Source: Bugula neritina (taxonomy: Eukaryota; Animalia; Bryozoa). From it: a stretch of 64,000 nt of DNA. How positions within the stretch are numbered: position 1 is the first letter of the stretch; every line of letters begins with the position of its first letter. Location of the stretch: the NCBI GenBank assembly GCA_964035545.1, contig OZ037766.1:30618773-30682772 (forward strand), read 5' to 3'. Below the pieces are notes generated by a model, which worked only from the letters and a program-made list of their open reading frames with translations, did not search any database and was not told the DNA's origin. Shown one piece after another: positions 90-59,261 of this stretch. The translations under genes and the position numbers were made by a program.

Positions 90-1992
90 TTCTAAGGTTT
101 TGCAGTCCAATTCCTTCAAGAGTTTTGTGACTGGAGTAATCTAACTCTAAACCAACTCTACCGTTGTATAAGGTTTTACCGCCAATTGTGTTGAGATTAG
201 GGAAGACGGGTGGTATATTTTTTGGATCTGAATTGGTGGAATGGGAAATGATGGCTACGTATCCAGAAACATCAGTTATCAATTTAAGATGGTTAACCAG
301 TTTTCCATACACAGAAGGGTTGAGCTCAATATGTACGTTTCCTGTGATGTACTTACACTGGTAATACAGACGACTGTAGTAATGCAGCAGTTGGTTACCT
401 GAATACTCCTTCTCTACACTTCTGTCTTCTGATTGGCCCTCACACACTTGGTCTAGAAGTTCTACAAATTACCAACTCTTTTATAAACAAACTATAATAG
501 AGCAGCCGGTTTAGGAGTTAGAAAGTTTGCCTCGTAAACACGAGGTCATTGGTGATGTTAAGAAGTGCATCCAGACATAATTGCTTCTGTGCCTCATTTA
601 GATAAGTTTTTAGCCTGCTTTAACAAAAACTCTTTCTATCAGAGATTTCTCACAAAGATAGTGAAGATAAAGTTTTGTGAGTTTTTTTACAAACAAACGA
701 TAACCAAAGTGAAGTCATCTAAGTTTTTTTAGTCTTGCTTCTATACTTTTTAAGAACAGCAAAATAATATATAAAAGAGCAAATGTTTGGTTAAAAAACT
801 AAGTGTTAACTATATCAAACCCTTATCTTTGAAAAATCTTCAGCGTTGGCCATAAGTAAACCAAAGAATAGTAATTGCTAATAATAAATAACATGAAAAA
901 TTCATCAGCTGTCCTTTTTATAACCAATTTTAATATTACAGTTTATAACACATTTTAAAGCTTTTTTGCTGTAATTTTTTATTAACAGAATTTTTTATTT
1001 TCTTTTTCAACAAATCGAACAACTTTTAATTAGTTTTAAATTTTTACTCTATTATAGACCTAAATACATGCATATATTTTAATTTATACTTTCCTGATAT
1101 AATAGCCGGTACTTCTATTGTTTGTTAGTCCGGAATGCATTTTCATGACACTTTCTTATTTAGAAACATTATTTTGCATTAAATAGTCATCTTATTAGTA
1201 CCGCATAAATCATTTACATTGTGCGAGAATGAAGGCTATGAACTCTTCATAACTCTTCATCGTGTCAACATAAAAGCAGATGCTTTATTTGCATAGCTAA
1301 ATTAAAGGTTCTATATGTACCACACAGCTCAACAATGCGAGGCGATTATTTCATGACAGAAAACATTTTTCTAATTCTGATAGAGAAGATAGTTTTTTCC
1401 AAAATATTTTTAGACAACAATAAGGGATAAAAATTTGTGACAAAGTGTTTTGGTAAGACAACTACTCGAATAAATTGACAAAAGCTTTTAGAAAAAAATA
1501 TACTGGTTGCCACGAAATTATTAACAAGCTCTCAGATGCATGATTAAAGTACTGGTAAAGAATTTTATGTCTGGGTTCTTCAAGTGTTTTTCAAATATAT
1601 AGTAAGAAAAAGAAAATTATACGTGATGGAGTAATTTAAGCATTGTAAATCTAAAGACAGCATAAAAACCACTTAAAGATCTGTGTTATAACTAACCAAA
1701 GCGTACAAATACTTTGTCATTGAATCAGTATTAATTATGTTCTAAAGTACATTAAATGCAATTTTAAAGCATATAATCAATAAAATAACTATACTATTGA
1801 GTATTGAGATATTGTAATATTTGAATAGTTTCAATAGGATGCTTATGAACTAAATTATCTAACTGATAACTTTTACAGCTTCTTATTGGTTTAATATTAA
1901 TCAATAAACCAACCAGAAAGTTGCTGACATTCTATTGTAGAGTACGATACCAAGCAAATCATTATGCAAACCTTTGCTGTTAATAAGAACAT
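90..1992 (-). CDS. Paralog E (partial, 5' end): EGFR-like receptor L-domain protein; signal peptide exon and L1 exon
   Basis: Exon 1 1914-1992 (MFLLTAKVCIMICLVSYSTIECQQLS, phase 1). Exon 2 90-461 (ELLDQVCEGQ...YYQCKYITGNVHI...FPNLNTIGGKTLY...GIGLQNLR, phase 1). A probable next acceptor AG lies at 1-2. Same exon phases as paralogs A-D but clearly more divergent. Confidence 0.8.
500..682 (+). mobile_element. tRNA-derived SINE family 1 (internally deleted copy)
   Basis: Matches the 13468 copy (gagcagcc...gtaaacacgaggtcattggtgatgttaagaag...tgtgag) but lacks the B-box segment. Confidence 0.8.
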
Positions 1993-2615
1993 TGCAAATA
2001 TTTTTTTCTCTCCTTTATTAACTGATTTTGCTCTCCTATCAACAATGATCATTTCTTACTATTTTAATTTTAGTACATTGTTGCTGTATAGAAATGTGTT
2101 AAGGCATTAATATCTATGAATGCAACCATCACTTTTTATTCAGTGTGATTGGCCTGGATAATTTAATTCATTTTGCAAATTTATTATATCAACACTAAAA
2201 GTTTGTGAAAACAAAAAACACACAAAAACTTTCGGTCGAATGTAATTGAAATATACTTCGAAAACACATCAGTTTCTAAACTGTGGATATTTCATAATTT
2301 TAGTCATGTAGCAATTAAAAATTTTACTTTAACTTTGTTTGTGTTAGTAACTGAAGGTCATCTGAGGGTCAACTGCTAAAACTGAAAATTTTTAAGCTAT
2401 ACTCTGCAGTGTTCTAAAAGGCTGCAGTCAGTTTGAAAAACTTTTTTTCAACAGGTGAGTTTTTGTAAATCTTCAAAAGAGTGAGTTTAGGGTTGTAAAA
2501 GCACTTTTGAGATTTAAGTATCTGTATGTTGGATCGATTGAGAATTGAATTCTGTGAAACAGTCAAGAATATTTGATCAGTTTAATCACTTTAATATAGG
2601 ATTTGGTGGTTGAAC

Positions 2616-16872
<14,257 letters not shown>

Positions 16873-18491: not shown

Positions 18492-20975
18492 TCACTTTGA
18501 TGGAAAGTTTTCCCGCATTTTGACTAAACTAGGTGTTGTTAAGTTGCTTGTTGACCCCATAAATATTTTTTGTGGTACTGGTGGAGCGTAGTAGTCAGAA
18601 TTATTTTGTGTTGCAATAGTCACTTTAGAAACTGAATAATCTGTTGGCTTAATAAATTTTCTTGGTGAAAATACTGGAGTGTAATATTCAGAAATATTCT
18701 GTGCAGCAGTAGTTGACTGGAAGGTGGTACTCTTTGTTGGCATCATAAACGTCTTTGGTGGAACTGGTGGAGTGTGGTAGTTGGGATTGCTTTGCGATGC
18801 AATAGCCACTTCGGGAATAGAACTATATGTTGGTTCTCTAACTATATTCGATAGAGCTGGTTGAGTGTTGTAGACAGTTGGTTTGGAAATAGAACTGTAT
18901 GCTGCTTCCCTAAATAAATTTGATAAAGCTGGTTGGGTGAGGAAGACAGCCGGTTTGGAGGTTGAACTGTATGTTGGTTCCCTAACTAAATTTGATAAAG
19001 CTGGTTGGATGTGAGAGTTGGGATTGCCTTGTGGGGCAATAGTTTCCTCAGCAATTGAGCTGTATGTTGGTTCTCTAACTATGTTTGATAGAGCTGGTGG
19101 GTTTTGGTAGTTACGATTATCTTGTGCTGTAATTGTCTGCTTGGGGATATCTGTTTGTTCTATTAATGTGGGCTCTGTCATTTTAAGATATTTCTGGTCA
19201 ACATTTGCTGGAAGTTTCGGTTCGCCGTTAGAGTTATGAAAATTATTTGAAAAGTATTTTTCAGTCTTGGGTATCATATTTGTACGAGCAGGTGCTGCTG
19301 AAATTGGCCTACTGCAACCTGAAGTTTCATAACTCCTAGGTACAGTAATAGTGTCAAGGTCAACTCTTTTTCTGATTGGTCTACCAGGCTTTATTGGAGC
19401 TGACTTTCTTGTTCTATTTACTTTTATTATTCCAGACTTGAAACCAATAATTGCTGTCTGTCAATAAAAAAATCTTTGAAATAACTTTATTTCTATATAT
19501 TTCTTTTAAAACTTTAGTCAGTGGATTTTGCATTTATGATTTAACATCATGGAGTGTTTTACTTTCACAAAAATTTTGAGAAAAAATTACCAGGCCTAAT
19601 TGGTTGAGAAAAATTATTTGCTCAATACGTAATTAATTAAACTACAATATCATAATATTTCTTTGATTAAAATAAATCTAGATTTAATTTTTTTCTACAT
19701 ATAACTCATATACTAACAACATACTATGATAAGTTTATCACAATTTAACTTACATCATTCTTGTATATTAATTTGAAGCATTTTTTTATTTAGAATTTTG
19801 CAAATGGCAGAATGGCAAATTTCTTCCAATTTAATTTAGAATCAATAATAATTGTGCTGTGTTTAACAGATGCAGTAATATTAAGCGTAGTAACGTCAAT
19901 AGTTATGAAAAAGTCAACCCCAGTGTCTAACTTTTTGCTAGTATAAAAGAAGCAAATTCGATTTTGTTTGAGTACTACAATATGCTTAATTTATAACTTA
20001 TAAAAAATAAAACTAAGAATAATAAACAATTTGCAAATCATGCAAAGTCCAGATTCATACATGCTGTGGCTAAGAAAAATAATCAACATTGATGGCTAAA
20101 AAGAATTATAGCTCTGTTTTTCTATAATTGCAATTGAAGTCTGTTAGTTGTTTGTCAAGTAATATAAATAAATGGTTATAGGAACTTACCCCCATTATTA
20201 AAACAACAACCATAATGGCGAATATAAGCACCACCACTATTTCACTTTGACTTTGATCATTAGGTTTCAAAGTGCTTTGTGCTTCTTGTCTATTTCTTTT
20301 ACCACCACTAGAGCTAGATGTCAAAGTGGCTGTTGTAGTTGTACTACTGGTAGAGCTAGATGTCAGAGTGGTTTGAGGTAGCAGTGCATTGGTCGTACTA
20401 CTACTACTAGAGCTAGATCTCAAAGTAGTTTGAAGGACTGATTTCGTTACTGTATCAGTGCCAGATCTGGATATTAAATTGGTTTGGATTTGTGTTCCAG
20501 TTTTTGTACCACTATTAGAAGTAGATCTCAAAGTGGTTTGGAGGACAGGTCCATTTGTTGTACTAGTACCAGAACCTGGTGTCAAGATGCTTTGGGGCTC
20601 GAACTTATTAGTTTGATTATTTTCAGTTGCTGTCAAAAATTAAATAGCTTAAAATAATTAAACTAGTTTATGTTTTGTGTTTGTATTACAATTTTTTAAG
20701 CTAGTTAAAAATGTTGCTTGTTGGCAAGATTCATTCCTTGAAAAAACATAAAATTGAAACACGTTGAATGGTTACAAAAGTTTATTCCTTACCTGGTACA
20801 CCCAGGTGAATGGGTGGATACCAGGACATGACTCCATATGATGAAGAATTTACCAGAAGGACTACACTGTACACCATTCCTCTAATAAGTCCATAGGTCG
20901 GTGATGTTAAATCTACTAAGCTCTGGTCTGTGTAATAAATAGGGCAAGTAGATTGTAGTTTGAGCATTGTGTGTG

Positions 20976-21047
<72 letters not shown>

Positions 21048-24000
21048 TGTGTGTGTTTTATTTTCATCATAATACAGTGTTTTACAACTAGCATAAGTTA
21101 CAAGAGCAGACAAACAATTAGAAAGGAAACATAGTAACAAATAACAGTATATAAAACATAAAGCTGTCGGAAGTGATGATGAGGCCCAGTGCGAAATAGC
21201 ATGGCTAGTGGTACGCGGGCCCACATATGACAATGTTTTGAATAAGTTTATTATCTTTTAATCTCTGCTGTTCTTGAATGTGGCAACACTTATAGATACT
21301 TTGCAGCATATTTCATAAAACAATTTACAACAGAGTTTCTGTGTAACTCGAACGTTAAAAGGTAGAATATACATGTGCTTATAGTAATGATTGACTACTG
21401 CTCAAAGCTCCATAACTTGTCATCTTTTGCTTTCTAAAAGATTCTTTATGAAGTTGATATTTTTTAACTTACCCGCTTCTTCTTTAAACAAATTGTATTT
21501 TGCATCAGTGTAACTTTTTATGTAGAGAGGAAAACTCTGAATATGTTTTTCTATTTCCGGGACATCTTTATTAAACTCAAGCGTCCATGAAAAGTTTGCT
21601 TTTCCATCATAAGAAAGAAATAGTGAGTACAGTGATCTTTCTTTCTCTCTTTAAATTATAATCTATATGGATTATTTGTTATAACAATTTGAATTTAGCA
21701 AAGCCTTTAGAATACTGATCTAATTTATGTTATAAATGTTTACATCAGAGAGAAATAAAGATATTAGTGAGAATTAATAATCTGAAGCACAACTCACTGA
21801 ATAGTACAACCATTAGGTACACAGGCTAAACATATCTTGTTGATATTATCTGGTACAGTGTTGTCTGGACAAGTCTGGACACATTTATTTCTTAATCTGT
21901 AGTTCTTACACTGGTTACACTCTGTGTCTAACTGAAAACACAAAGTTACTGTGAACAAGCTAAATAATGTATATAGTGATTTTCCGAAACAATTATAAAG
22001 CACAGTAGTTGTTTTTCCAATACAAATTTACCAATAAAAATGATGATAGACTTTGGAATCTACAATATTTTAAAAAACTTTATCAGTTAGGACAGAATAT
22101 TAAAATTAGAAAAATATTTTACTCAAAAATCATATCTTATCGTACTAGCACCATTTCACATAATACTTTATTGTTTTTGGTGTATCTAATGTTATATTAT
22201 GAACATTATAATTCTGGCTTTGATTATATTACGTAGTTTAACAAAAATTTTATAAAATATGGCCATGTTCTGAACCTATTCCTTAATATTTCTCCACTTC
22301 ATTTATTTCAACTAAAAAACTAAATTTATTAAAAGAGTAGCTGGTATGTCTTTAGGTATATATAGCTATTAGGAATTGGCACACAATGTCGCTATATACA
22401 AATATTCATCCATGCACTCTAAATACCTGTGGAATACAGAGACACAAATGTCAAGGTGCTATTTAAAACCCAAGTTTACGAACTTACACTACCAAAACAA
22501 CCTCCTGCACACTGACTGTGACAGCTGATACATTTGTTTGTCTTTGTATGAAGATATAGAGGTGGGTCACAAGTGGAAACACACGTGTTGTTTAACTGAT
22601 AGCCTCCTGTGCACATCCTACAAGCTGAATCAGCATGTGGGGGGCATCTGTTACACGCCCCGACTCTATTCTTGCATCCAAATTGACACAATGGATTACA
22701 TGTTGGGCGTGAACCTGTAATTACAAGTGTGGCAACATAAAACTGTGACAGAATTTTTCTCTGAGGTTTCAAACTTTAAGACAAAACTTTGTAAAGTATT
22801 TTGTTAACTAAATATCAAGTAATAAAAAAAATGTTTTTAAAACCAATTGCTTTTCTGCACATTTAAAAATAAAATCATATGGGAGTAAAACATTATTTAA
22901 AAATTCCTAGGGTAGTTCTTATAAAAGATAAACCAATAAATCGTCGTTGAATACCCCCACAATTGTCCGAGCTAATGATTATTTTGTTTGTAGCTGAATT
23001 GGTAATGTGTTTCAGAAGGTTTTCTGTCTCAGTTACTGTTATAGAACAAGTTTTATGTATTTTTATGTATACGGGACCATTAGTTCTCTCTAGACTATCA
23101 AATCCAAGATAATCCATATTAGGTACTTGCAAGGCCAAAGAGTAATCTCTGTAAAAGTATAACTCAGGTTGCTAGATTCAAGTCACGGTTTATAGTGACT
23201 GGGGTATCATCAATAATAATGCATATAATACGTCAATATAGTTGTGAATGTATTGCAACACATTTATTATACTTTGCAAACTTTCACATTGTCTGTTATT
23301 TAAGATATACAAAATCATCAACTGAAATAAAATTTATAAATTGTGAAAATCTTTTACAAAACTTCTCTATTAGTAACAATAAGCTGCGTTCAACCAATCA
23401 ACTTATTAAAATTTGCAAGCTTTTCAATTTTTTAACAAAATAATTTGAGTGAGAAATCTTCTATCATAATTATTAGCCTTCGAGTTCAATTGTTCTGTAA
23501 AGTTGTGGCTATATCTTAATTGGAATGTTTAATTTGTGAGGTTTATTGTTTTTAAAAAAATTTATAAATCAGAAATAAAGAAAATTTAAGACAAGTTCTA
23601 ACCTATAAGCTACTATTTGCTTTAAGAAAATAATAAAACAGCTTTTTTAATAAAACTAAAAACAAAGTAACTGTAGGAAAAAGGTAAGTTACGTATCTAC
23701 TTTTACCTTTGGCAGACATCTCTATTTCTAATATCTCTGCAGTAAGTGGTGTCCCTGAAATCCCCTTCCCCACCAACAACCTTTAACCTTCCCCAAAATT
23801 TAGCCAGATCTTTATAGCCAGGGTAAAAAAGCCTCAGTACCACAGACCCAGTGATGTGCTCTATGTGTTTTGTTACTGCACTTATAGCAGAATGATGAGC
23901 CACTGTAAGGCAAAATTCAATATGTACAACAAAGTTACGTTGGTATTATATTACCCTATCACAATTTAAATAAATTCGAAGTAATTAATGTATGCATCAG

Positions 24001-27000: not shown

Positions 27001-28518
27001 CTCTGAATGAACTTGAGAACAGTTTTCAACACAAGCACCAGATGGGAACATGTAGAAACCAGAGCAGCCTTCAAACTACAAATAATAAGAATATGCATAG
27101 GTTATTGTTTCAAATAACTCTTTTAGTTTAGGATTTTATTATACATTTTTTTCTAACATAAATCTAGCTTTTAACTAACTTAGTTTTATTTAGTAAGTTT
27201 TTAGTCACAAGTTCTTTTTAAAGAAAGTTTTTAAAACCATATTTAAGTCATTTAATAGAATTTAAAATAGCAAACAAACTTATTGTTCAAAGTAAGTAGC
27301 TATCTACAAGTCATAGTACAGTACAATTTTGCCACATGTTAGTAATCAAGGAGTATCCAGTTTTAATTTTATATTTTATAAACTGATTGTGTTTGTGACC
27401 AAATTTTGGTTTACCACAATGGCAAAATTATCAACAAAAATAGAGGAATAAATCATTAATATCCCTGCTGAATAATTAAGCTGATTGACTTTCTAATGCA
27501 ATGCAAAACTTTTGCCACTACTTTGACCTTGACCTAGAACTTTGACTTGCAAGCAGGAGCTAACCATTATACAACTTGGGGGCACTGCATGGGTGATTTC
27601 AATACGACACCTAAATTCAATTAGAAAGAAATAATTTATAGTTTCAAATGTAATTCTTTCTTAAAATCCAATCCACTACAATTTCTGGCATAGAATCAGT
27701 CACCTACCTTGAGACAGTCAGCTTCAGCTGGTCCTCTACATCCGGTGAGACAACTCTCATGACAACAATGATTTGCTGTGTTATGATAACAGCCAGTAGT
27801 ACAACTTGGATGGCAGTTTGTAAAGTCTATTTGACAGTCTTCTGCATCTGGTCCCCAGCAGTCGTTTCCCAGACAAGATGAATGACACTGGCCTACATTT
27901 GACAAGTTGCAGCAGTTACTTTATTATGTTGTAAAAGTCAAATAAAGTTGTATCAAAGAATGACTCTGCCCTACAAAAGCGTCTTTGACAAAGAATATTT
28001 TTAATTATGGATTTTTTTGTACAAACCAACCTTTTTGAATTAGAAAAAATTATTTTGTTTATCAAAGAATGCATGCAAATGTAAAAAGTTTTACTTTTAA
28101 TAAACACTCGCATACCCACCTGTACTGCATGTCGCAACCCGGATATCTATTTTTCCTGATGTTTTTACTTTAGACCAATCTGTTTTGTGATCAAAGCAGT
28201 TGTCAACCTTTATTAAAATGTTTCTACCAGAAACCTCTTCGTCATAAAAAATAAAATCTTCATATAAAATAAAAGTTTCAGTGTTATCATTTTCAAGTTT
28301 GATTTAATAATTATAGTGTAGTCACTTTGGTATAGCGTAATTCAAAGTTATAATAGTTAAGACTTATATAGTACAGGTATACATGTATGGCTTATATTTT
28401 AGCAGCACTTTTTTTCGAAAATGAAGAAGTCCCTAATAAATACAATTTCAGATAATGGCAAATGCGCTTTACACTTTATTCAAACACAAATGAAACATAA
28501 ATTTTTATTTTAAGACAT

Positions 28519-28577
<59 letters not shown>

Positions 28578-28614
28578 CATATATATATACATATATATAT
28601 ATATACATATATAC

Positions 28615-44645: not shown

Positions 44646-47600
44646 TTAAGAATACATTTCATTTTTAGGTGGTGTTTCAAATTGACGAGACAGTGCTACT
44701 GAAGCTGGTCTACTACTATAGGGGTAACTCTTAGGTCTAGTAACAGCTTGATAGTTAGCAAATTGCTTGGTTAGTCTACCGGGTGATCGAGAAGTAGACC
44801 TCTTTGCTGATTTTTTGGATTTTAGTGATCCAAATTTAAAAGCTGCTCCTGCGATCTACAAATGAAAAAATTATGACTAAATAGTTTTGTAAAATTAAAG
44901 CAGCTAATTTTAAATTTGTTTTGAAGCACTCCGAAGAAGTTTGAAACCATATCAACTCTTTGATTAAATAAAAAAAACTATGTGCAACAATTAAACAAGA
45001 TGTTTAGGCTGTTCTAAAAAACCTTTTGATAAATATTGTTACACTAAGCCTATCAAAGTTGTATCTTGTATTTACAATAAAATAATCCACAGTTAACTTT
45101 TTGCCAAGAGATTAAACCTGATGCCAGTGTAAGTGCAAGTTTGCAAAACTATATTATATAAACAAAAAAGTAAAAAAAATAAAGTTATAAAATTTTCAAT
45201 CATGCTAGAGAGGAAAGAGTAAAAAAAATGTTTGATGCTTTTTAATATGAAAAACCTATGCTGTGAGCCTTTCTAAAAACATACAGTAAAACAATTTTTT
45301 CTTTTTAGTTTTAAAGCTAATACCAACAAATTTACCATATCATATTATTTCAAATATATGAAAAAATTTGTTGCAAACTAAAACAAATTTATGTCAAGAC
45401 TTTTACAAAACCTAAATTACAGTTTTCCAAAAGTTTTTTTGCATTTGTTAGTTTTATAAATTTTCATTGCAAGGCTAAAATTTTATTAAAATTCGATTGT
45501 TATAAAGTTGTAGCAAAAATTACAAGTCCAATCATCTTTTTTAGTAAAACCAACTCTGAAACCTCAAACATTTATCTCGCATGAAAACTACTCGTTTCTA
45601 AAAAATATAAAAAGCTAATAAAAAATCTGAGTTGACAAATATTAATTTTAAGTTCCGATTAGAACAGTTTTCAAAAGATAAAAACCCATTCAACAAATCA
45701 TTAAACGTGTTGACTTAGAGTAGAATTTTTGTGTAAAAACATGTCATGAGATAATTTCCTATTTTTAATCACTAGCAAGTTAATTTTTCCAGTTGGCTTG
45801 CAATTTCATACAGTATTATAAAACAAAAAGTAATTATTGTTGACTTTTAATGCATGATATTCTCAGCTGTTGCAACACAGTGGGCTGGCTAGTTTTAAAA
45901 ATTAAAGCGGGTTATCAAAAATCTTAAATTATTCACAATATAGGTTTGCGCAATATTTATTATAAAATGAAATTGTTTGAGCATTCAACTCTCAACTCTC
46001 CTTCAGATTATAACCAAACAGATATTATTAGTATTTCAATAGATTCTTTAAGGGGTTCCTGATACCCCCTATACAATTAGGAGTTGTGGTCTCTCACAGA
46101 AGATAGGCTGAATCTTTAGCTAAAGAGAAAACTCATTAAAAATTTAAAATTTAGCTGCTACTTGAAATTCTAATTATGCTATAGAATTGTTAATGTAGGA
46201 AATTAATATTTTGGTATAAACACACATATTAGCAGTTCAAAAAAAGTTTAAAATATTTCTTCATGGATAATTTTGGCAGAAATTATCTTGAAAGCATTTA
46301 TGTGGTTTTGGTTACTGAGTAATGCTAAAGTGGCACTTTAGCATTGCTCAGCACCAAAACCACAAAAATAAGTTCAAGCCTATTTTGCTCAACAAATTTC
46401 ATTTTGGAAGACCACAACTCTTAATTGCAAGGAGATCCATTGGGAACCTTTGAAAAGGGTCTATATGACATTAATGAAGTGTTTCGAAACTTCTTTAAAT
46501 CAACATTATTTATAATTAATAGCTTTGTCTGACATTTTTACAATAAAATGTAAGTATTCATCCTTTATTAACTTACCGCTATTATCATCGCAACAGCTAC
46601 TACAGTTGCTATAAGAACTATTGCTACTGCTCGGTTTGGATTTTGACCATCAGAGCCAGGTTTCAGTGTGGTTCCAAGGTCTGGTCCAGTTTTGGTAGCT
46701 TCACTAGAATTTGGTGTTAAAGTGCTTTGAGTTTCTGATGAATTTGTTGCATCATGACTAAGGTTTGAGAGAAAATGGCTGATTGTTGGTTGAGGCTCTG
46801 ATTCCCTTGTCATACCACTAGAGTTGAATCCTAGAGTGCTTTGGGAGTCTGATGAATTTCTTATATTACCACTATAGCTAAGTCCTAGTGTGCTTTGGAG
46901 AGTTGGTACATTTGTCATACCAGTACTAGAGCTAGATATTAGAGTGGTTTGTGGTTGTGATGTAGTGGTCGTACTATTACTGGAGGTAGATGTCAAAGTA
47001 GTTTGGGGTAGCAGTGAGTTGGTGGTACTACCACTAGAGGTAGACGTCAAAGTGATTTGGGGTGGTGCTGTAGTTGTCATACTACTACTAGAAGTAGATG
47101 TCGAAGTAGTTTGGGGTGGTGCTGTAGTGATCGTAATTCCAATGGTGGTAGATGTTGAAGTAGTTTGGGGTGGTGCTGTAGTAATCGTGCTACTATAACT
47201 GGTGGTAGACTTCAAAGTAGTTTGGGGTGGTGTTGTAGTGGTCATGCTACTACTAGAAGTAGATGTCAAAGTAGTTTGAGGTGGTGCTGTAGTGGTCGTA
47301 CTACTACTGGTGGTAGATGTCGAAGTAGTTTGGGGTGATGTTGCAGTAGTCGTACTACTACTAAAAGTAGATGTCGAAGTAGTTTGGGGTGGTGTTGTAG
47401 TGGTCGTACTACTACTGGTGGTAGATGTCGAAGTAGTTTGGGGTGGTGTTGTAGTGGTCATACTACTACTGGTGGTAGATGTCGAAGTAGTTTGGGGTGG
47501 TGTTGTAGTGGCCGTACTACTACTGGTGGTAGATGTCGAAGTAGTTTGGGGTGGTGTTGTAGTGGTCGTACTACTACTACTACTGGTGGTAGATGTCGAA

Positions 47601-50600
47601 GTAGTTTGGGGTGGTGTTGTAGTGGTCGTACTACTACTGGTGGTAGATGTGGAAGTAGTTTGGGGTGGTGTTGTAGTGGTCGTACTACTACTGGTGGTAG
47701 ATGTTGAAGTAGTTTGGGGTGGTGTTGTAGTGGTCGTACTACTACTGGTGGTAGATGTCGAAGTAGTTTGTGGCACCCGTCTATTCGTTATATCATCTTC
47801 AAAAAATGAAAAATCAAAAGCGTGTAAAATATTCAACAATATTTTTGGCTCAAATTTGATCATATGAAATTTTATCAAGCTTATTAAAAATGTGCTCTCT
47901 AACACAAATTATTGCTTGACAAAAAATATACTACAAATACTGTTACTACTTACTTGATATAAAAATATTCACAGGTGGATACCAGGACATGACTCCATAT
48001 GATGAAGAATTTACCAGAAGAACCACACTGTACACCATGCCTCCAAAAAGTCCATAGATGTGTGATGTTAAATTAACTGACCTTCTTCCTGCATATTAAG
48101 TGTTAGTAGCATTTATAATTGTAATTAATATTAGTTTCAGACATCCAAAACCGAATGTTTTTAATATTTTGTAATATATGTGCCTTTGTTTTTGAGAATT
48201 CTCATATTAACAGTATACTAAAAGTAGCCTTTAGAGTTTAGATTGAGGGCTTTGTTATAAGTCAGTTTAGATTTTTGTGTAACTTAGGCTATTTAGTATG
48301 AACTAATTTTGCAAAATGTTGTGATAGGTGCTTATATTTTTTTTATTAGCACACTGTGCATTTCTTTGTTCCATGCAATGACATGTGGGCATAATAACCG
48401 CTATTTATTTTACCTGATTCTTCTTTAAACAAATTGTAGTCGGTATCGGCGCAGCTCTTTATGTACAGCAGAAACTTCTCAATAGCTTGTTGTTGTGCCG
48501 GGATATCTTTATTAAACTCAAGCACCCAAGAAAGATTCCCTTTTTCATCATATGAAAGTCTGATCGAGTAGAGCGAATCTTCCTTCTCTCTTCAAATTAC
48601 AAACTCATTTTAGTATTCATCAACGTTTGGTTTACTGCCATCATATTATCATCTAGTTGTTTAACCAGAGTAAATAAAATCTGCTATTTTTATGAAATAG
48701 TTAAAAAACTCACTGAATAGTTTGACCTCGTCCCAGTACACACGCCTTACATGTGCTGTTGGAATTATCTGCTACAGTGTTGTTTGGACAAGTCTGGACA
48801 CATTTATTTCTTAATTTGTAGTTCTTACACTGGTTACACTCTGTGTCCAGCTGAAAGACATATAGTGAGTTATTGTAGCGAAGAACATATTAGATAATGC
48901 TTTGTTGTCTTTAAAAGCAAAACACTTTAAAACTGGTAGGTTGATAGTCTGTGAAAGGAAAAATCGGCATCGATATAAAGTAATATACACAAGATACCTA
49001 GTTGCACATGCTAGACATTATCAGTACATTGCAAGCAAAACTAACTCTCACCAACGCATCCAAATAATCACAAATGAAACATACTACAAATGATCAAACA
49101 AAATTTAATCTCTTAAAAAACTTTAAATGACACATTGATATTGCCTAATAGTGCTGATGCACCGAAATCTTTGCCAAGCAGAGAAAAATTTAGTTTAACC
49201 TGTTTAGCTATATAAGGCATAAGGTTAGAGCATTTATAAAGCAATTATTACATTTGGTAAGATTTTGCTGTTATTTAAAAACTGCAGTATAAATCAGATT
49301 TCAAATTAAAATTAAGTTAAATTTTAAATTAAAATTTCAATTTAAAAGTACAGGAAACGGTTACATAATTAAGAAAGAAAAACAAGTGCAATTTAAGTGT
49401 GACTGTGAGCTGTGATGAAGTTGCACAGTATTTTGAAACTCCTGCATGCTTTCTTTATAATTTATGGTTTTGCTACAGAAGGCTATGAAAAATTAGGAGT
49501 CATGAGATAACATTGTTTCAGCAAAATAGTAAAGCCATTGCTACAACTAAAAAGCTCAGCATAATAAAAAAAACTAGTTGTCTGTAAAAGTCTTAGTACA
49601 TACTCCGCTAAGGAAACACACAGGCTAATATAAATTGTCGGTCAATAGCAATAGGAGGTCAACCTAGTTCAACAGTCAAACTTGACAACAATAATGTTGT
49701 CTTATTTATTTACCCTACAAGCTATAGTTATAAATCATAATAAATATATCTGTGAGGTAATATTTACATAATGTAAGTTACTTCCTACATGGCATGGGCT
49801 TTAGTAATAATAAATTATTGCAACACTAAAATTATTATAAAATGTTTTGATTTAATTTGAGTCATTTTGATAATAATATAGCAAACAGAGTGCAGTGCGA
49901 AAGATTTCAATACAATATAGTACTCAGTATTTTATTGAATATATAAACCTCATTGAATCGCATGTAGAAATATCACAAAGACAGACTTACATTACCAAAA
50001 CAACCTCCTGCACACTGACTGTGACATCTGATACATTTGTTCGTCTTTGTATGAATATATAGAGGTGGGTCACATCTAGTAACACAAGTTTTGCCTAACT
50101 GGTAGCCTGCTAAACACACCCTACAGGTTGAACTAGCATGTGGGGGACATCCGTAGCACGCCCCGTTTCTATTTTGACATCCAAATTGACACAATGAGCT
50201 ACACGTTGAAAGTGAACCTGTAATCACAAGAGTGATATGAGAAAGGTTTTTTTGAGAAAGTTGATTAACTTTATTCCAAAAACTCGAATAATCAATGGAA
50301 GTCTTGAAAATATCTTTCTAAAGACCATTAATTACGTATCAATTCAAAAGCACCATGTGATGAGAGAAGAACTAATTGCTCAAACCATTCATTTCTTCAT
50401 TGAAAAAATTTAACTTTAAAGGTAAAAACCGACTTTACAAATCCTAAGGTGACTTTTATTTTAAATAAATTAAAATACATATTAAAATAAGATTAAAGAA
50501 GTTACCCCCACATGACTGAATGGTTATGCTGTTTGTAGTTGAGCTGGTTACGTGATACACTAAACTTTCTATTTCAGCTTCTGTTATTGAGCAGGTTTCA

Positions 50601-53600
50601 CGTATTTTTATGTATACCGAACCATGTACCTTCTCAAGACTATCAAATCCAAGATACGCCATTTTAGTTGCTTGCAGCGACAGGGCGTAATCTCTGTAAG
50701 AGCAAATCCTAATTTAGTAGGCTTTTGTTCTAGTACATTTGTAAATACTAAACAATTTTTATATAATTCTTATATATCTGTAGGTATAAATATATATATA
50801 ACAATAAAAGGTATTTAGCTTTACAACGCCTGTCTTTTTAAAGTTTACTAAATTATTAATCCTTCAACATAAATTTCTAATTTTTTGGCAAACCTTAGCA
50901 ATATTTTACTTTTAATAGAAATTATAAGTCTTTTAACTTATTTAAATTATTAGCAACATTTTTTTTCAAAACAACGTAAGTGATAAAGTTTTAACGCAAG
51001 TTAGTTGAGTTTTTGACATATGGTGTTAATATTGTAAATAAATTCCAATAATCAAGTGAAAGTAATACATATATATATAACGCGCGCACACACACAACAC
51101 GCACACACACGCACACAGATATACATATATACACACAAATATATAAACACACACAAATATATATGCACACACAAATGTGTATATTTGTTGACTTTTACCT
51201 TTCACATACATGTGCATTTCTAAAATCTCTACAATAGGAAGTAGTACTAAGCTCTCCTTCCCCACCAACAACCTTTAGCTTCCCCCAGAACTTTGCTAAG
51301 TCTACATGGGTGTTCCCTTGAAACCTGAACACCGCAGAACCTGTGATATGCTCCATGTGTTGAGTGACACTTTCTATGTGATCGTCGGACATCACTGTAA
51401 ACCAAAATTAAATTCATACAAGAAAATTACCTTAAGCCTTAAATTATTGCAACAATATATTATGTTACTAAATTATTACGATCTTATACTATATTATACT
51501 ACTGTATTGCAAATGTCTATTATTTTTTAACTTAAACTGAGGTTACAAATTTACAATAAAATATTCATTTAAAATAAAACTTAGCTAAAGAATTTTTTGT
51601 CTCAACACAAGAAAATTGTATTTTGAAATCGTACAAGCAAATGGCCAACAGTAGAATAAATAAATATATGTACATCGGCAAGCTTCAAACATTTGAATGA
51701 GTCAGTAATGGGTAAAAATTTGAAAGTAATAATTATACTCTTATTAAAAAATTTGTTTAAAACTAGCTTCCAGGCAAGAATGGAAAGTTTATTATAAATA
51801 CTCGGCTAAAAGCCATAAAATTCTCTGTTTATGTATTTTTAATATTTACAATGTTATATTTGCGTCTACATTGAAGACACCCTTTTCCAATTCTGAATTG
51901 AAAAAATTAGAAAAAATTATACTAAAGTAGTGTGACAACATCAATAGCTATTACCTAAATTGTCGGCAATCACATGACCCTTGACATGTGTACACCTAGT
52001 TTCCTGTTCACGTAAAGATATAGCTGTCCAGTCCACATGACTAAAGTCACACCACTTCTTGCAAGCTCCTTCACATTCAACACATCTCCGGTTAACATCT
52101 GGTAAATATCCTGCTGGACATTCTGTGGTGCAGGTTCCATCATCATGCTTGAAATACCCAACTAGAAAGTTTACAGAAAAGTATTAGCCTAATAGGAATT
52201 TTTGTGCGTGTGCTGTGCGCCTGTGTGTGTGTGTGTGTGTCTGTGTGTGGTATTGATTACACTAGAAGTTAAACTTGTGACAATCAACTTTTTATATGGT
52301 CTTCACAAACCCAACAAAACATAATAGTTCCATGCTTTCCTTATCTTTGTTTGTTCCAATTCTCATTAGGCTCTTCATCTCAGCACTGCCAAAACAGTTA
52401 TTATGATAAACTTTATAAGAGAGGCTAACTTACTGCTTTGCTCATCATACTCGTAGATCTCTATTTCTGTAAACAAGAATCTCTCATTTCCCACTGCGGA
52501 GATTCCAAATTGATTCGTAAAAGGATGTTTTTCTGTTCCATCTTCATGTTTGCACACGACATGAAATACTCTGCTTTGTGGAATTTTCTTCACTTGAATA
52601 CACAACTCCCAACCAGCATCGTAGGACTCAGGATGGCTAATGGCGTACGAAGCATGAGCAGCATTGGTAGTCACCGTAAATGGCTTGAAAACGTGCAGTA
52701 GAGCTTGAAAAAAGCAACATAGTTGTGATTCATAAATAAACAAGCTGCAATTTAAAGTGTTTGATTCATTTGTCCTCAGGTTTGAAATATGCTCCTACAA
52801 CATGCTTTGAATACGGCATAAGGTATTGCAATGACAAAATAAGGAAATGTATTTTTAGAATGCTGCAATAACTGTGTCTCATTGCTGTCACAAGGCTAGT
52901 TGGCAGTTGTCAAAAGTTTTTCCGAATTCACCAAAAATATCTGTAAAAGTAAGTTTCAGGAACCACTTCATTAAGTCATAAAAAATAGATAAATAAATAA
53001 ATGCAGTCAAAAAAATTGTGGCTTGATTTAGAAAAGATAGCTGAGTTACGTTAATATGTATAAAAAAGTAACATAATTTATTATACAATAGGCCTATATG
53101 AAATTCTTTCCCGCCAATTCCATCCATTCCAATTGTATTTGCAGCAACATTTGCTTTGAGTTATTTTAAACTGAACTGAACTGAACTGACTTATGTAACA
53201 TTTGTTTAGATGAGATCATTAGAATATTTATAAAATGCTTGTTCATCAAATACTAAAACCATAATATAATTATTTTTCAAAATATGAAAAACAATATGCC
53301 GTCATAGAGAATAGTTAAAGTCTTATAAAATTACACACATATAGGTCACTCCTCATCTACTGTAATAACGTTACTCAAATTAGGTTATTTTTTAATTTGA
53401 TTTTTTTTGAAAAGATGGATATTCTAGACCAGACATGTAGCAGCAAACATATGCTGAGTACTAAAAAAAATTCTACTAGCATTCTTAAGAACTCTGTAAT
53501 ACTTGTAAAACAAAAGATCCTTACAACATGTTTGTGTGTATTATAACATAATCTGAAAATTAAATTTAATACAACACTTGTAGTTTTCTTAGACTATAGC

Positions 53601-56600
53601 TCTCCGCTAGTTGATACTTACTGCAATATCCCGAGCTACACTGACTAGGGAGATACAGAACTGCGTGGGAAAGTTGTATCAACTTATTTGGGATTACAAT
53701 AATAATCCATGCCCAGTGATTTAAGTAGCCATCAGCTTTTTGAAATATAGGTATGTCTGTTTGTCCATCATTTAACAGAGATGGGTTATTTCTCCTATAC
53801 CCAGGTTCTGACTCAGATATCGTTTGGTATGCATAATTTTTACCTCCTGAAACAAATACAACTTTATATAGAACAAAATTCTGCAAAACTTTTCTTGGGG
53901 TAAATTTTTATGTTTAAACTTAGATATGAGCTTTTCAGCTTAAAATTTACTATGTTTGTCAGTTTTGCTTGCTGGCTGAGCAAGCAAAAGATGGTTGCAC
54001 CACAAGTTGAAAAAATGATCACAATTTACAATCAACTTCAAATTCTCAAACATATTTACAATACATATTACTACTTGGCCTACAAATAAAAGAATTATGT
54101 TTAAGAAGAGCTCACCTATACCAAAAACTTCAACTTTTTTTAACACCAGACCAGGTGAATCTTTCCCAGCTACAATAATGAACTGTCTAGTCAGTCTGTG
54201 TGGGTCACCACTATCACAGGTTATTATTGATTTTGGTTCAAGTTCGTTGCCTTGAAATTTACACAAATCTGTATCTGGAAGAAGGTGAGGAGGTGCGCGT
54301 TGTAGTCTGTCACTACGTAAAGTAGTCAAATATGTTACATCTTTCAGTGTGTAGGGTCCTAAAAGATATTCACTGTAATTATCATAAGTATTAGCGCCAG
54401 TTTTGGTCTTTGTACAAATAACTTTCAAATGTTTTTGCCGGTATATGAGCTCTACACAGTATCGCTGTATAGCAACTGACTATTAGGTAGGCCAAGTATA
54501 GATTACTTCAGATATAGTAATGAAATACAACATTTTGGTTAGTTAGTTTGTTAAAACATAAATACAAGTCTCACATGACTGCTTACAAGCAGATATATTT
54601 TTACCGGGTACATTCAGACACCGCCGTGCATCTACAGTAGTTCCTACTTCAACTATAGCATAGTAGAACCTGATGTTAGTCTTCAAAACAACAGACCAAT
54701 ATCCATAGTCTTTTTTTAGTCCAATAAATACAGAAGTAGGTTGTGGTTTGAGAGCATTAGAAGATGGGAAGGCAATATTCGCCCCATTCTGCCATATTGT
54801 GCACTCATCGGAACTGTAGGTAGTATTGGACTGATCTTTTCCTTCTACAAAAGTTGTCATAGAAGTGCTTATATAAAGACTGCCTACAATTACTAGATTT
54901 TGTCATAAAGCATATGGTAACTTCTCTGACTAGAAGAGTGCTCGTTTAAGATATACTCAGCATACCTGGACATTCATTTACACAGAACTTATCCTTGATA
55001 CTGTAATGTCTGTCAGGATGATCAACAAACTCATTAGAGAGGATATCATAAACTTTCCCTGAATGAACTTGAGAACAACTTTCAACGCAAGCACCAGATG
55101 GAAACACATAGAACCCGGTACAGCCTTCAAACTACGAAATAATAATATGTGTAAGTTATTTTATTCTAGGCTTTTATTATATAGCTACAGTTTAATTTTG
55201 TTTTCAATATAAATCTAGCTTCTATAAGCACATTTTTTAACATATACAAGTCTATACCCGCAATTTAGCTTCATATATAACAATATCTATTAATTGGGTT
55301 TTTGAAAATTAGCTATTGAAAGCACTTTTAAGGCACAAAATAAATCTTCAAATAACAGATAAACTCATTGGTCAATCAAAACAGTTACAGTTATACAGTC
55401 AGATTTGAATAGATCATTGATTAGATAGTAGTTCTCTTTTAAGACTAGTTGACAGTACCCTTTTAACAATCGGTTCTACTTTAATCAAACTAGGCTTAAA
55501 AATATAAACTAATCTTCAGAAGTTTAAAACAGTAATTTTGAAAACAAATTTATTAGCATGCAAAAGTAAGAAGCTGTTTTATTATATTTGGTTGTTCTTC
55601 AATCAACATATTAAGTTTACAAGTAAACTTTGCAAACTAGAAACTTGAATTCTGTAGTAAAGACCTCCTACATACCCTGATAAGATCCACACTTATTGAT
55701 AAAAGAAATTAGTAGTGATGAATTTACCCAGTGGTCCCGTGGTGTAATCGTTAGCACACTTGCTTGCAAGCCAGATGTCTCGGGTTCGATTCCCAGTAGG
55801 AGCAAAATTATTTTTCAAGCTTTCGGCTTTAGTGAAGTGTAGTGGTAATACTCCGAGGGAGTTGAGAGGTTAGAGCTGCCTGAACACTGAAGGAGTAGTA
55901 GATAGGCCAGTGGAGTTCAGAGAACTGGGTGGGATATAGTGATGATGTTATCCAATGGTTTCCGTGGTGTAATGGTTAGCACACTTGCTTGCAAGCCAGA
56001 GGTCTCGGGTTTTATTCCCAGTGGGCGCAATTATTATGGAATGAAATTTTATGATTTCAACCTCCACTCCCCCCCCCCCCCTCTTTATAAGTGTCGGGAA
56101 AGAAATCATTTTGATAGCAACTATGTGATTAATTTCCGATAAACCGATCTGAAATATCAAATTACAGACTTTAAAAAAACTTCAATTCCTAAAATCAGGT
56201 ATTTATACATTTGATAGAGGTTAAGTGAACTTTGTGATGAACATAAAAGTTACTAAACGCCAATAGAATAGCTAATATATAATCAGACACATACCCTGAG
56301 ACAGCCATCTCTACCAGGTCCTCTACATCCGGTGAGACAACTATCATGACAACAATGATGCTTTGTGTTATGATAACAGCCAGTAGTACAACTTGAATGA
56401 CAGTTTGTAAAGTCTATTTGACAGTCTTCTGCATCTGGTCCCCAGCAGTTGTTTCCCAAACAAGATGGATGACACTGCCCTACATTTGACAAGTTGCAAC
56501 AGTTACTTTATTATGTTGTGAAAGTCGAATAAAGTTGTATCAAATGCTGCTCAGATATTTTTAAAAACCAAAAAGCCCCATAGTGTTCTGTAAAAATACA

Positions 56601-59261
56601 CTATCAAATGGATTACGGTTAAATATGACAACATCTACCACTTTAGAGATTGTCACAATATTCAGTCCAATCTTTGACGCACCATTTAAAAACATACAGA
56701 TTGCATATTACACAGACAGTAACTTATAACTGATGCCTGCAAGCTTATTAAATGTCTTGATCAAACATCGGGAAGGGGGGACACAAATCGATTTAGCCTT
56801 CACTAGAATATATAGCTATCAGTTTTTTTTAGTAGATACTTCACATTTTAGTGAGATACCAAAATCAACCTCAATGCTGTAACCACTATATATTATTACT
56901 ATTATTTTAATTGCTTGTCAGAATGTTCATCAAATATTACAAATGCTCTTCCTTTTCCAACTAACCTAAAGTACAGGTTCTCAGACTGCTACCAAACACA
57001 GTTCCCCATTTTACCACATTCGTCCACTCTGTCTTCTGTCTATAGCAGTTGGTTATATTGACAGCAACATCACCATAGGAAATTTCTAAACAATACAATT
57101 AAATCATTTCTAAGTAAGCCATTATTATATCCAGAATGTTCCATTTAGAAATAGGTATGTGTCTGATTACCATGCAAGTGTTTGACTTACCAACTCTACA
57201 AAAATCCAACCAGTTCATGGTATATATAGTAATTAAATCTCAGATTTAGTATGGCATACATGTCAAATGTTTGAATATCTGAAGGCCATGCTTAGAAAGA
57301 CTTCAAGAACTAAGTTTTATTGCAATACAATGAACACCCCCAAACTATGTTATAGCCAGAACAAAAATAATGCATGCTTTCTTTGCCTTGCTTAAAAAAT
57401 TTTACCATCAGGCAAAATGGCTTATGAGAGCAAGAATTTCGGTATAAGGGTACAATTTACCAAACTTGTCAAACATAGAACAGCTTGGAGTATCTCATCC
57501 ACCTATAATTATATCACAGTTTTGTAGTATTAAAATGCATGTGATTTACGCATTGTCCTGTGTAATTAAATCTCAGATTTAGTATGACATACATGTCAAA
57601 TGTTTGAATATCTGAAGACCATGCTTAGAAAAACCTCAAGAACTAAGTTTTATTGCAATTTAATAAACATCCCCAAACTATGTTTTAACCAGAACAAAAA
57701 AGATTCTTTGCCTTGCTTAAAAAATTTTACCATCAGGCAAAATGGCTTATGAGAGCAAGAACTTCGGTATAAGGGTACAATTTACCAAACTTGTCCAACA
57801 TAGAATGGCTTGCAGTATCTCAACTATAAAGGAAAGTTAAAATGCATCTGCAACCTACACAGCACAATATATGAGAGATATTTAAACCAGTTCACTGTGT
57901 TTATGTCCAATTCTATCTCTGCACATCTCTATATCCCACAGAAAAGCTAATGGAGAAATTGCATAAACTTATAGTTGAAACTTATTTTTAACACTTTTAC
58001 AATGTATAGTAACGCAGTAAAACAGTGAAAATAAACACAATATATGGATATAACATACCGCGAAGTCTACTCAGTCCAATTCCTTGCGTCAGTGTACCAT
58101 AGTAAACTAGCTGTAGGGCAAATTCAGTAGGATGCAACTTTTTGCCACCAATTGTTGTGAGACTTGCCAAAGCAGGTGGCTTTGTGTCAAATCTAAATCT
58201 GCTGTTTGTTGCTATGAAAACTGAACGCGAAACGTCAACTATTGAATCTAGAAATGTTAACTTCGAGTCGTAGTAGAAGATGCTTGAATCAACATATACC
58301 CCACCGCCAACAATATATTTGCAGTGGCGGTAACGTCTTAGCAGATATTTATAAAATTGATTTCCATATCCACTATATATATTTCCATAAGGTTTCAGGT
58401 TTCTGTACGATCTCTCCAGGGTTCTGTTGGTCTGGCCTTGGCATACTTGACTTAAAAGCTCTGTAAATCGAATAAACATGCATATCTTACAACTAAAAAT
58501 ACATTTGTGTGCGGGGGGGGGGGTTATCCTCCCATATTTTGTTACTTGCGTAGAGGAATTATCTTTTCTTAAAAAGCTATTTTATCAGATATACTTACAA
58601 ACTTTGAAATTGCTACCCTGCCATCTGCTGGTTTCATCAGAATTGACGTTGCGACAAGCAGGTTTTTGAATTAATTTACTAGGCCTTAAAAAACACAAAA
58701 GCTGTTGGAATTCCAATGAAGTAAAGTGTTAAAATTTGATGAGATTGCTGCAGCAACTCTGGCGTACCACATGCACACTGTGACTGCAATCATTGTAAAT
58801 TTTCATGGGACTAGTTTCAATGCAATTTCATGTATATCAGTTTGAGCTCATGTAATTTTTTAATATGAAAAAGAAGAAATTTTGCTTTGAAATACAAGTG
58901 CAGTACACTTTTGCTTTATATAGCCTATGAAACCATGTTCATTTTTCGTCAAACTTTATAATAGTTAGCATTGATTGCTTCAATTTCAACTTTTATAGTC
59001 TTTTATAAAGACTAGCAGCATAAAAACAGTGATCACAATTTTATAACATAGTTTTCACTGTTTATCAAACATTCTACTTTTGTGTGTGTAAACCTTCACC
59101 AGGGTTTACATATTTGATTTTTTTACTTGATGTGTTGATAAACATCAAATATATGTTCATATAATGTTATCTAACTTACCTGAGAGCTCTTGGCCTTCAA
59201 CTGTAGCATGTAACACACAGCAGGTTATAAAGTATTTGAGTATGAAACTATATAAATTCAT
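44646..59261 (-). CDS. Paralog D: kinase-less EGFR-like/lectin-like/FN3/mucin receptor, 18 exons, about 1542 aa, longest stalk, short tail
   Basis: Exons 59180-59261, 58059-58460, 56966-57085, 56295-56479, 54966-55131, 54605-54844, 54116-54358, 53622-53846, 52434-52703, 51955-52161, 51199-51394, 50506-50693, 49991-50217, 48714-48850, 48414-48589, 47954-48088, 46577-47796, 44646-44855 (IAGAAFKFGSLKSKK...PKNEMYS*). Same phases as A; total 4629 nt. Confidence 0.88.
46038..46464. mobile_element. MITE family 2
   Basis: Colinear with 10948-11377, including the TIRs and the internal hairpin. Confidence 0.8.
46900..47775 (-). repeat. Coding 54-bp tandem repeat (PPQTTSTSTTSSSTTTTT), mucin stalk of paralog D
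   Basis: About 16 units in frame; homologous units at about 3775-4185 in paralog A. Confidence 0.93.
55733..55804 (+). pseudogene. tRNA-like sequence (tRNA-Gln-like 5' half), probable pseudogene or SINE head, copy 1
   Basis: ggtcccgtggtgtaatcgttagcac...cgggttcgattccc: A and B boxes present, but acceptor and anticodon stems are imperfect. Confidence 0.65.
55957..56029 (+). pseudogene. tRNA-like sequence, copy 2
   Basis: Near duplicate of copy 1, including about 20 bp of upstream flank; B box degenerate (ggttttattccc). Confidence 0.6.
57228..57822. repeat. Direct tandem duplication (about 270-bp homology, about 333-bp period) in paralog D intron 2
   Basis: gtaattaaatctcagatttagtatg...agtatctca occurs at about 57229 and about 57562. 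Confidence 0.9.

Follow-up and report, generated by a model that had tools for sequence, protein, structure and literature searches.

Analysis of a 64,000-nt stretch of the Bugula neritina genome (the window, to which plain coordinates refer) and its flanking sequence revealed a family of eight tandem genes, with kin on other chromosomes, encoding kinase-less receptors with an ectodomain that is, on sequence grounds, derived from EGFR. In its ancestry an EGFR copy lost the kinase and most of domain IV, and two two-exon phase-1 modules entered immediately behind the dimerisation arm of domain II. Additionally, the lineage gained a domain of ~100 residues (two in G6–G8), a new tail and a stalk that differs in length between genes. 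Individual exons were the units of all database searches and folding; spliced models served to check reading frames, intron phases, lengths, hydropathy and a single motif.

Cluster layout and exon structure

Five paralogues lie head to tail on the minus strand of the window, namely four complete genes (G1–G4) and the start of a fifth (G5), which accords with the original prediction of at least five; three plus-strand paralogues (G6–G8) adjoin them on the left, giving a total of eight genes in ~110 kb. G1 (44646..59261) encodes 1542 aa, with a mucin stalk of ~400 aa, a transmembrane (TM) segment and a 69-aa tail bearing 4 Tyr; G3 (18492..29848) encodes 1536 aa, with a 321-aa tail in which 5 of the 15 Tyr are in YxxP motifs; and G4 (2616..16872) encodes 1537 aa, with a 232-aa tail of 6 Tyr, 4 of which are YxxP within a 93-bp repeat. 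G2 (43579-31933 or 43579-31787, depending on its last exon) has a short stalk and a weak TM segment. G5 (1..1992), represented by its signal-peptide exon (ATG at 1992) and L1 exon (about 461-90), runs off the left edge of the window and ends at G000:C2:30607209, where its stop and that of G8 are convergent and 995 bp apart. The common exon and phase skeleton that had been claimed was borne out: G1–G4 each have 18 exons, GT-AG introns throughout, an identical phase string and 62 cysteines in the ectodomain, and their frames contain no internal stops. The intergenic gaps, expected at 0.6–1.9 kb, measured 1067, 1939 (2085 if the G2 end is short), 1620 and 624 bp. At the 5′ end of the genes, the region of the signal-peptide exon is about 92 % identical among paralogues.

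The domain order can be followed exon by exon in G1 (all on the minus strand). Exon 1 (59180..59261) specifies the signal peptide, exons 2–3 (56966..58460) the L1 domain, with an internal intron common to EGFR and missing in the insulin receptor, and exons 4–5 (54966..56479) the first part of CR1 (domain II) with the dimerisation arm. There follow two F-type-lectin-like modules, insert A in exons 6–7 (54116..54844; weakly matched) and insert B in exons 8–9 (52434..53846; no fucose motif), after which exons 10–12 (50506..52161, with the exon 12 donor set at 50506) complete CR1 and encode a divergent L2 domain. Exons 13–14 (48714..50217) specify a shortened CR2 (domain IV) without the DGP tether motif, exons 15–16 (47954..48589) a ~100-aa domain that is FN3-like by pattern only, exon 17 (46577..47796) a Ser/Thr-rich stalk of 54-bp repeats plus most of the TM helix, and exon 18 (44646..44855) the TM end, a basic stop-transfer stretch, the tail and the stop codon.

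Ancestry of the ectodomain and absence of a kinase

Across the ectodomain, the exons matched those of the genome's own EGFR in the order L1-CR1-L2-CR2, and seven of nine introns agreed with it in position and phase. Pfam identified CR1 as Furin-like and placed L1, which is 30–35 % identical to that of EGFR, above its cut-off in G2 and G5. L2 reached no Pfam or PDB significance on its own, the only PDB matches of its exon being weak ones to the L2 of ErbB3 and fly EGFR. At the sequence level, the arm residues of domain II are kept in all eight genes, and the tether motif of domain IV (DGP-H/F plus the following loop) is absent from all eight. The EGFR module from which exon 14 descends is ambiguous. 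The likeness to EGFR/ErbB receptors, including ErbB2 and ErbB3, thus comprises domain order, introns, arm, a single TM segment and a Tyr-bearing tail, whereas the family differs in having no kinase (ErbB3 retains a pseudokinase), in adding two domains inside domain II, an FN3-like domain and a mucin stalk, and in its truncated, tether-less domain IV. Members of the insulin receptor family also possess L and CR domains and an FN3-like domain after L2. There, and in Sdr-type decoys, however, L1-CR-L2 is followed directly by three FN3 domains and the L1 exon is uninterrupted, neither of which was seen here, where a second CR follows L2 and the split L1 and intron pattern are as in EGFR. Derivation of the FN3-like domain from the insulin receptor was not supported, the FN3-like exon showing no match to FnIII-1 of the genome's InsR (E 0.14).

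The predicted lack of a kinase was upheld, as neither a kinase motif nor a kinase tblastn match was found in 202 kb around the cluster (best E 0.69), and the end of the G3 tail and its stop are conserved in a sister lineage. Three genome-wide kinase searches, the large ones scoring only part of their candidates, gave no match nearer than about 1 Mb to the cluster. An independent sample showed the same G3–G4 junction and stop.

Drosophila Sdr is a kinase-less receptor L-domain protein. Nematode IRLD/HPA proteins and DAF-2B (PMC9262388) are also L-domain proteins without a kinase, and IRLDs are likewise expanded and variable, whereas all of these, Sdr included, lack the inserts, the stalk and a long Tyr tail. 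DAF-2B (PMC9262388) and Sdr are of insulin-receptor type and the bryozoan family is of EGFR type; as it arose separately, from bryozoan EGFR, the likeness is convergent. Three kinase-bearing EGFRs exist in this genome, and three are documented for the bryozoan Membranipora (PMC4914847) in a survey of animals that took only kinase-domain sequences (PMC4914847), so that kinase-less genes were excluded by design. Protein searches returned family members only as Bugula-labelled JGI fragments, with a length filter hiding full-length kin, and we found no paper on the family or on bryozoan recognition receptors; the kinase-less EGFR-derived family is apparently undescribed. Long matches of the 50 % library (P0003, P0004, P0007–P0012) were discarded, those scanned being repeat or Ig-like proteins of fungi or bacteria.

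Inserts, stalks, tails and sequence evolution

In the architecture originally proposed (signal peptide, L1, CR1 with two inserted domains, L2, CR2, FN3, mucin, TM and tail), L1 and CR1 were confirmed by Pfam; L2, FN3 and the lectin folds were not, as none reached Pfam or PDB significance in exon-wise searches. Neither FN3-like exon had a Pfam or PDB match, and PDB profile matches of the insert and FN3-like exons were at chance level; a bacterial fucose-lectin PDB match (E 4–8) was similarly dismissed as chance. The four phase-1 insert exons did give exon-wise profile matches to F-type-lectin exon halves (E 2.8e-5, 0.0035, 0.008 and 0.08), the halves coming in the expected order and the exon phases being arranged alike. 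The F-type lectin domain (PF22633), with at least 131 exon matches in this genome, shares with the inserts a two-exon module with flanking and internal phase-1 introns and a similar C-terminal strand pattern, whereas the inserts have no Pfam match, lack the fucose motif and are nested inside an EGFR domain. This fucose-binding motif, H-x26-R-x-D-x4-R/K (PMC5297725), was absent from the inserts of G1–G4. The second halves of inserts A and B are weakly alike (E 0.008), and no resemblance was found between the first halves. AlphaFold of exon 9 alone, a half-domain, gave a pLDDT of 39; an ESM Atlas search yielded nothing above noise, and a metagenome scan with exon 7 no match.

Variable stalks and tails had likewise been anticipated, and this held for length (tails of 69–321 aa in G1, G3 and G4; short stalks in G5–G8), but the G2 tail is frameshifted or short and tail Tyr content is ordinary (2.5–5.8 %). 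Because ~68 nt present in the paralogues are missing from the 5′ end of the last G2 exon, splicing to the first acceptor yields an end of 6 residues and a membrane segment that is weak (31953-31933, minus strand; 6 aa then stop, protein of 1148 aa); a second acceptor at 31936 (31936 to 31787, minus strand) gives a 50-aa Tyr tail in the ancestral frame. Low-Tyr or missing tails occur in G1, G2, G5 and the distant relative C6, of which the 3′ end alone was read. YxxP is enriched only in G3 (5; p 0.027) and G4 (4 of 6 Tyr, 0.44 expected), in counts inflated by internal repeats. Tyr motifs are not enriched in G1 or G5–G8 and none is common to the family; those of G3, together with its tail end and stop, are conserved in the lineage about 9 % divergent. 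The tail motifs of Hydractinia Alr are reportedly of ITIM/ITAM type, whereas such recurring motifs were not found in the family, Yxx[ILVM] being enriched in no tail. Judging from mucin dimensions, stalks of ~230–400 residues would presumably raise the heads of G1 and G4 well beyond the height of an EGFR ectodomain.

Exon-wide dN/dS was 0.32–0.64 throughout, indicating net purifying selection on all exons, with no positive selection shown by these values. Between lineages, L1 has undergone 38 amino-acid and 37 synonymous changes, compared with 0 and 13 in EGFR L1 with exon L1b left out (Fisher p 0.0004); as no exon has a dN/dS as high as 1, this faster change may reflect relaxed constraint. The cysteine-rich exons are homogenised between paralogues, synonymous sites included, possibly by neutral gene conversion, and L1, L2 and the inserts diverge. 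Orthologues are recognisable one-to-one between lineages. In a single DNA-contig run (X1), differences between the G2 haplotypes are dense near the L2 exons, and ~1.6 kb at the 3′ end is free of them; those in the coding sequence of exons 10–12 comprised 5 synonymous and 4 replacement.

Candidate functions

From the recognition-receptor system originally envisaged, a real, kinase-less family of EGFR origin with putative lectin-like inserts and variable stalks and tails stands, in a cluster larger than claimed, whilst an immune, allorecognition or chemosensory role is not established in view of purifying selection, the absent fucose motif and the restriction of YxxP to G3 and G4. Tentatively, and at a little under an even chance, we favour dimerising, non-catalytic surface recognition receptors with tyrosine tails that would be phosphorylated by another kinase. 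With the arm kept and the tether lost, family members would be able to dimerise among themselves, probably with no need of EGF, and the divergent L domains would, together with the putative lectin-fold inserts, form a binding surface for external ligands, with microbial, substrate or neighbouring-colony surfaces as candidates, raised clear of the membrane by the stalk. Receptor clustering might then lead to tail phosphorylation by a separate tyrosine kinase (an EGFR or one of Src/Abl type), with the YxxP repeats in the tails of G3 and G4 possibly recruiting Crk/Nck-type SH2 adaptors, and G2 and G5, which have a minimal tail or none, may be non-signalling or decoy members. In an extended form that we consider unlikely, the bryozoan EGFR ectodomain would be a scaffold for variable recognition, in which shared, converted dimer modules pair at least eight paralogues combinatorially, interchangeable L and lectin-fold domains decide which microbes, symbionts, settlement surfaces or other colonies are recognised, and signalling and decoy members share one cluster.

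The conserved arm may also leave room for a role as EGFR modulators, i.e. decoys or co-receptors trapping EGF/neuregulin ligands or pairing with the three true EGFRs; as there is no kinase C-lobe, a paired EGFR could not be activated and would be damped or lent docking sites. Direct EGFR ancestry, the available kinase-bearing partners, the short stalks of G5–G8 and the precedent of nematode IRLD/HPA proteins and DAF-2B (PMC9262388) are consistent with this. We nevertheless regard it as somewhat unlikely, since ~325 inserted residues separate L1 from L2, two domains that must clamp one EGF between them, L1 shares only 30–35 % identity with that of EGFR and is changing fast where EGFR L1 is invariant, G1 and G4 have long stalks, and eight diverging copies exceed a decoy's need. 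Conservation of the G3 Tyr motifs across lineages, retention of the arm and the rapid change of L1 weigh against adhesion or surface-coat glycoproteins (in epithelium-cuticle or zooid-zooid attachment) with tails tied to the cytoskeleton instead of relaying recognition; mucin stalks, lectin-fold modules without a sugar motif, purifying selection throughout and the low-Tyr or missing tails of G1, G2, G5 and C6 would fit such a function, which seems decidedly improbable.

That the cluster is a colony allorecognition (fusion/rejection) locus is more doubtful still. The animal is colonial, the ectodomains are tandem, mosaic and dimer-competent, and the G2 haplotypes differ densely around L2; this pattern, however, comes from a single run with 5 synonymous and 4 replacement differences, and orthologues remain one-to-one across lineages. 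Hydractinia Alr (PMC9546547), an example of clustered, non-catalytic recognition receptors in invertebrates, likewise has tandem paralogues, divergent ectodomains, a single TM segment and no enzyme domain, whereas Alr ectodomains are Ig-fold, and Alr has been shown to be extremely polymorphic in its alleles and to have a fusion phenotype. Finally, it is hardly credible that the genes are dead or that their kinase lies elsewhere through misassembly or distant splicing: the last exon of G2 is damaged, but frames are open, splice sites intact, the 62 cysteines conserved and dN/dS below 1, and the recurrence of the G3–G4 junction and stop in an independent sample and the convergent gene layout also argue against an artefact.

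As a growth-factor receptor, EGFR usually exists in few copies and evolves slowly. In this genome its ectodomain has been separated from the kinase, has accommodated two further domains within domain II and has multiplied into a family that evolves faster and has more members than the true EGFRs. The cluster not only offers a natural setting for testing whether the arm can mediate dimerisation when tether and kinase are missing, but is also a source of candidates for the sensing of microbes, surfaces and neighbours in a fouling, symbiont-bearing colonial animal.

Gene models and genomic setting

Six-frame and self-comparison scans of the window identified one multi-exon gene in five minus-strand copies: G1 (59261-44646; 1542 residues), G2 (43579-31933; 1148 residues), G3 (29848-18492; 1536 residues) and G4 (16872-2616; 1537 residues), each of 18 exons, and G5, which starts at 1992 and runs out of the window. 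Splice sites of G1-G4 were set by comparison between copies, giving models with GT-AG introns, an identical phase string, zero internal stops and 62 ectodomain cysteines apiece; these spliced models were used for frame-type checks, and database searches and folding were run on single exons. The original prediction of at least five head-to-tail paralogues with one exon/phase skeleton and intergenic gaps of 0.6-1.9 kb was borne out, with gaps of 1067, 1939-2085, 1620 and 624 bp. A genome search and the left flank added three plus-strand paralogues, G6-G8, from C2:30567514 onward, such that the cluster totals eight genes over ~110 kb, five of them pointing towards the other three; the stops of G5 and G8 are 995 bp apart. 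G6-G8 have short stalks and one additional predicted domain ahead of the membrane. Exons 12 and 13 of G7 and G8 run together as a single open frame (flanking stretches L017:9579-10000 and L019:1219-1641), so these two genes have lost an intron that EGFR and the remaining paralogues keep.

The last exon of G2 is missing ~68 nt at its start, where contigs of DNA run X1 are identical to the assembly. With its first acceptor the protein stops after six residues, which may make a GPI-type or secreted end; an alternative acceptor 17 nt further on brings back the ancestral frame. Run X1, a single sample, differs densely from the assembly near the G2 L2 exons, with zero differences over ~1.6 kb at the G2 3' end. 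A full-depth X1 contig resembling G2 exon 15 (33385-33416) is differently joined (32892-33633 and 33447-33570), and possibly represents an extra paralogue or a rearranged copy absent from the assembly.

The immediate upstream neighbour of G1, likewise on the minus strand, is a nuclear hormone receptor gene (63294-63998, on to C2:30683873; ligand-binding domain E 0.0006) with a zinc-finger-like exon upstream. Just left of the cluster are tandem single-exon ankyrin-repeat genes of ~1000 aa (C2:30508534-30548100, L009-L013), and this array includes an exon for a caspase domain (30512864, E 2.8e-12); long open frames at C2:30506671 (minus) and 30539744-30543500 (plus) look by eye like LTR-retrotransposon gag/pol. 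A short interspersed repeat in introns and intergenic gaps of the window (~514-714, 5671-5820, 13507-13680 and 30826-30968) has very high depth in X1. Elsewhere, small contigs C15-C314 hold dozens of kinase matches interrupted solely by TAA/TAG, typical of the ciliate genetic code, and are probably contaminants.

Descent from EGFR and the kinase

Cluster exons match those of one of the genome's own kinase-bearing EGFRs, on contig C5, in the same order, with 7 of 9 intron positions and phases in common; both have an intron inside L1, unlike the insulin receptor. Exons 6-9 (~325 residues) occupy the phase-1 intron immediately after the dimerisation-arm exon. This arm is retained in all eight copies; the tether motif of domain IV, which the C5 EGFR has in the region corresponding to human EGFR 553-597, is absent from all eight, and their domain IV is shortened.

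No kinase was found in 202 kb around the cluster, either by scanning for motifs or by tblastn with the kinase exons of EGFR and the insulin receptor (best E 0.69; control cross-hit E 0.002), and the sister lineage keeps the G3-G4 junction as well as the G3 tail end with its Tyr motifs and stop, in agreement with the earlier claim that the complete genes end without a kinase and that the gaps contain none. Genome-wide, among the candidates scored, the nearest kinase matches lay ~1 Mb off, and kinases stood directly behind four L-domain genes (C5:9.99, C4:24.26, C1:20.39 and C1:13.28 Mb), two of which were read, C5 as EGFR and C1:13.28 as the insulin receptor. The EGFR count of this genome, three, equals that of the bryozoan Membranipora in a survey restricted to kinase-bearing sequences (PMC4914847). 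Judged by sequence, the cluster genes descend as paralogues from EGFR, and with no kinase found they do not rank as receptor tyrosine kinases.

The genome search also returned related cysteine-rich exons at C2:25.17, 27.00, 30.81, 30.94, 31.76 and 31.78 Mb, with another five at C6:9.42-9.60 Mb; the 3' end of one C6 relative shows FN3-like exons, a stalk and a TM like those of the cluster, and its tail has no kinase. At C2:25.17 and 27.00 Mb the EGFR-like L domains and arm are well conserved, three kinase searches gave no match nearby, and these genes may be intermediates between EGFR and the cluster family. The closest database fragments came from two JGI samples labelled AY690838, a Bugula neritina mitochondrial accession (PMC2678162), whose EGFR gene has 91% DNA identity to that of this genome, which probably places the window in B. 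neritina or a sibling lineage.

Exon evolution, inserts and tails

Because dN/dS was 0.32-0.64 for every exon among the five closest paralogues, the genes appear functional, with no exon-wide positive selection. Between lineages, L1 codon changes numbered 38 replacement to 37 synonymous in the cluster versus 0 to 13 in EGFR (p 0.0004); by this count cluster L1 changes much faster than EGFR L1, yet below the neutral rate. Exon 4 of G2 and G7 has a synonymous divergence of 0.00, against 0.5-0.9 in adjoining L and insert exons, a pattern repeated in exon 14 and in part in exons 3, 5 and 13. The homogenised exons hold near-identical tracts of 150-230 bp ending near exon borders, and star-like trees were confined to exons 4 and 14; together these observations indicate exon-scale gene conversion between paralogues, inverted copies included.

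At least 131 F-type-lectin-like first-half exons (PF22633) were found in the genome, with large clusters at C3:7.1-8.1, C5:0.46-1.5 and C6:10.7-12.6 Mb, on C8 and elsewhere, a large-scale expansion of the module. Those modules that were read have two exons with phase-1 introns, as does each insert, and profile comparisons made exon by exon agreed with the inserts in their order, at E 2.8e-5 for exon 9, 0.0035 for exon 7 and, more weakly, 0.008 for exon 8 and 0.08 for exon 6, which is suggestive of an origin by exon shuffling from this family. In the genome search, insert exons 7 and 9 turned up in the eight cluster genes and nowhere else. The fold found no support in Pfam, PDB, the Atlas or an AlphaFold model of a half-domain, and the fucose motif defined for F-type lectins (PMC5297725) is absent from the G1-G4 inserts; thus, of the predicted lectin-like character, 'lectin-fold-like' is fair and 'lectin' says more than the results show. 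Likewise, the proposed FN3 domain stands as a resemblance of exons 15-16 by pattern, and nothing beyond it.

Stalk exons encode 73-406 residues (Ser/Thr 34-60%), and TM hydropathy exceeds 3.1 in G1, G3 and G4 and is 1.57 in G2. Tails span 134-336 residues in G6-G8 (open-frame reading) and 79 in G5, have an ordinary Tyr content (2.5-5.8%) and can be aligned solely within G3/G4 and within G7/G8. YxxP, a candidate SH2 site for Crk/Nck/Abl, occurs four times in the G4 tail (0.44 expected) and five times in that of G3 (p 0.027), an enrichment stemming from internal repeats in both; ITIM-like motifs were not enriched in the tails.

Candidate function

Our tentative preference, at slightly under even odds, is that the cluster encodes non-catalytic recognition receptors with kinase-phosphorylated tails. 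The untethered, retained arm would mediate dimerisation; L1, L2 and the inserts would make a variable binding face for a ligand; the stalk would determine the reach of the ectodomain; a separate kinase would phosphorylate the tail, and short-tailed members could serve as decoys. The sequence shows kinase loss, the retained arm, the lost tether, the inserts and the rates of change; dimerisation, ligand, phosphorylation and role are inferred. The main rival, modulation of the animal's own EGFRs, is rather unlikely; it has a parallel in the nematode IRLD/HPA proteins and DAF-2B (PMC9262388), and the big L1-L2 insert, fast L1 and long stalks weigh against it for G1 and G4, less so for G5-G8. A role in adhesion or a surface coat seems improbable, an allorecognition locus more improbable still, and an artefact scarcely credible.

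In the literature searched, mostly outside subscription papers, neither this architecture nor a bryozoan family of the kind was found described, in keeping with the suggestion of an undescribed family; family-specific homologues came only from samples labelled Bugula, in searches whose length filter conceals full-length relatives. The cluster thus reads as a real, apparently undescribed family in which known parts are newly arranged, and recognition is its candidate function.
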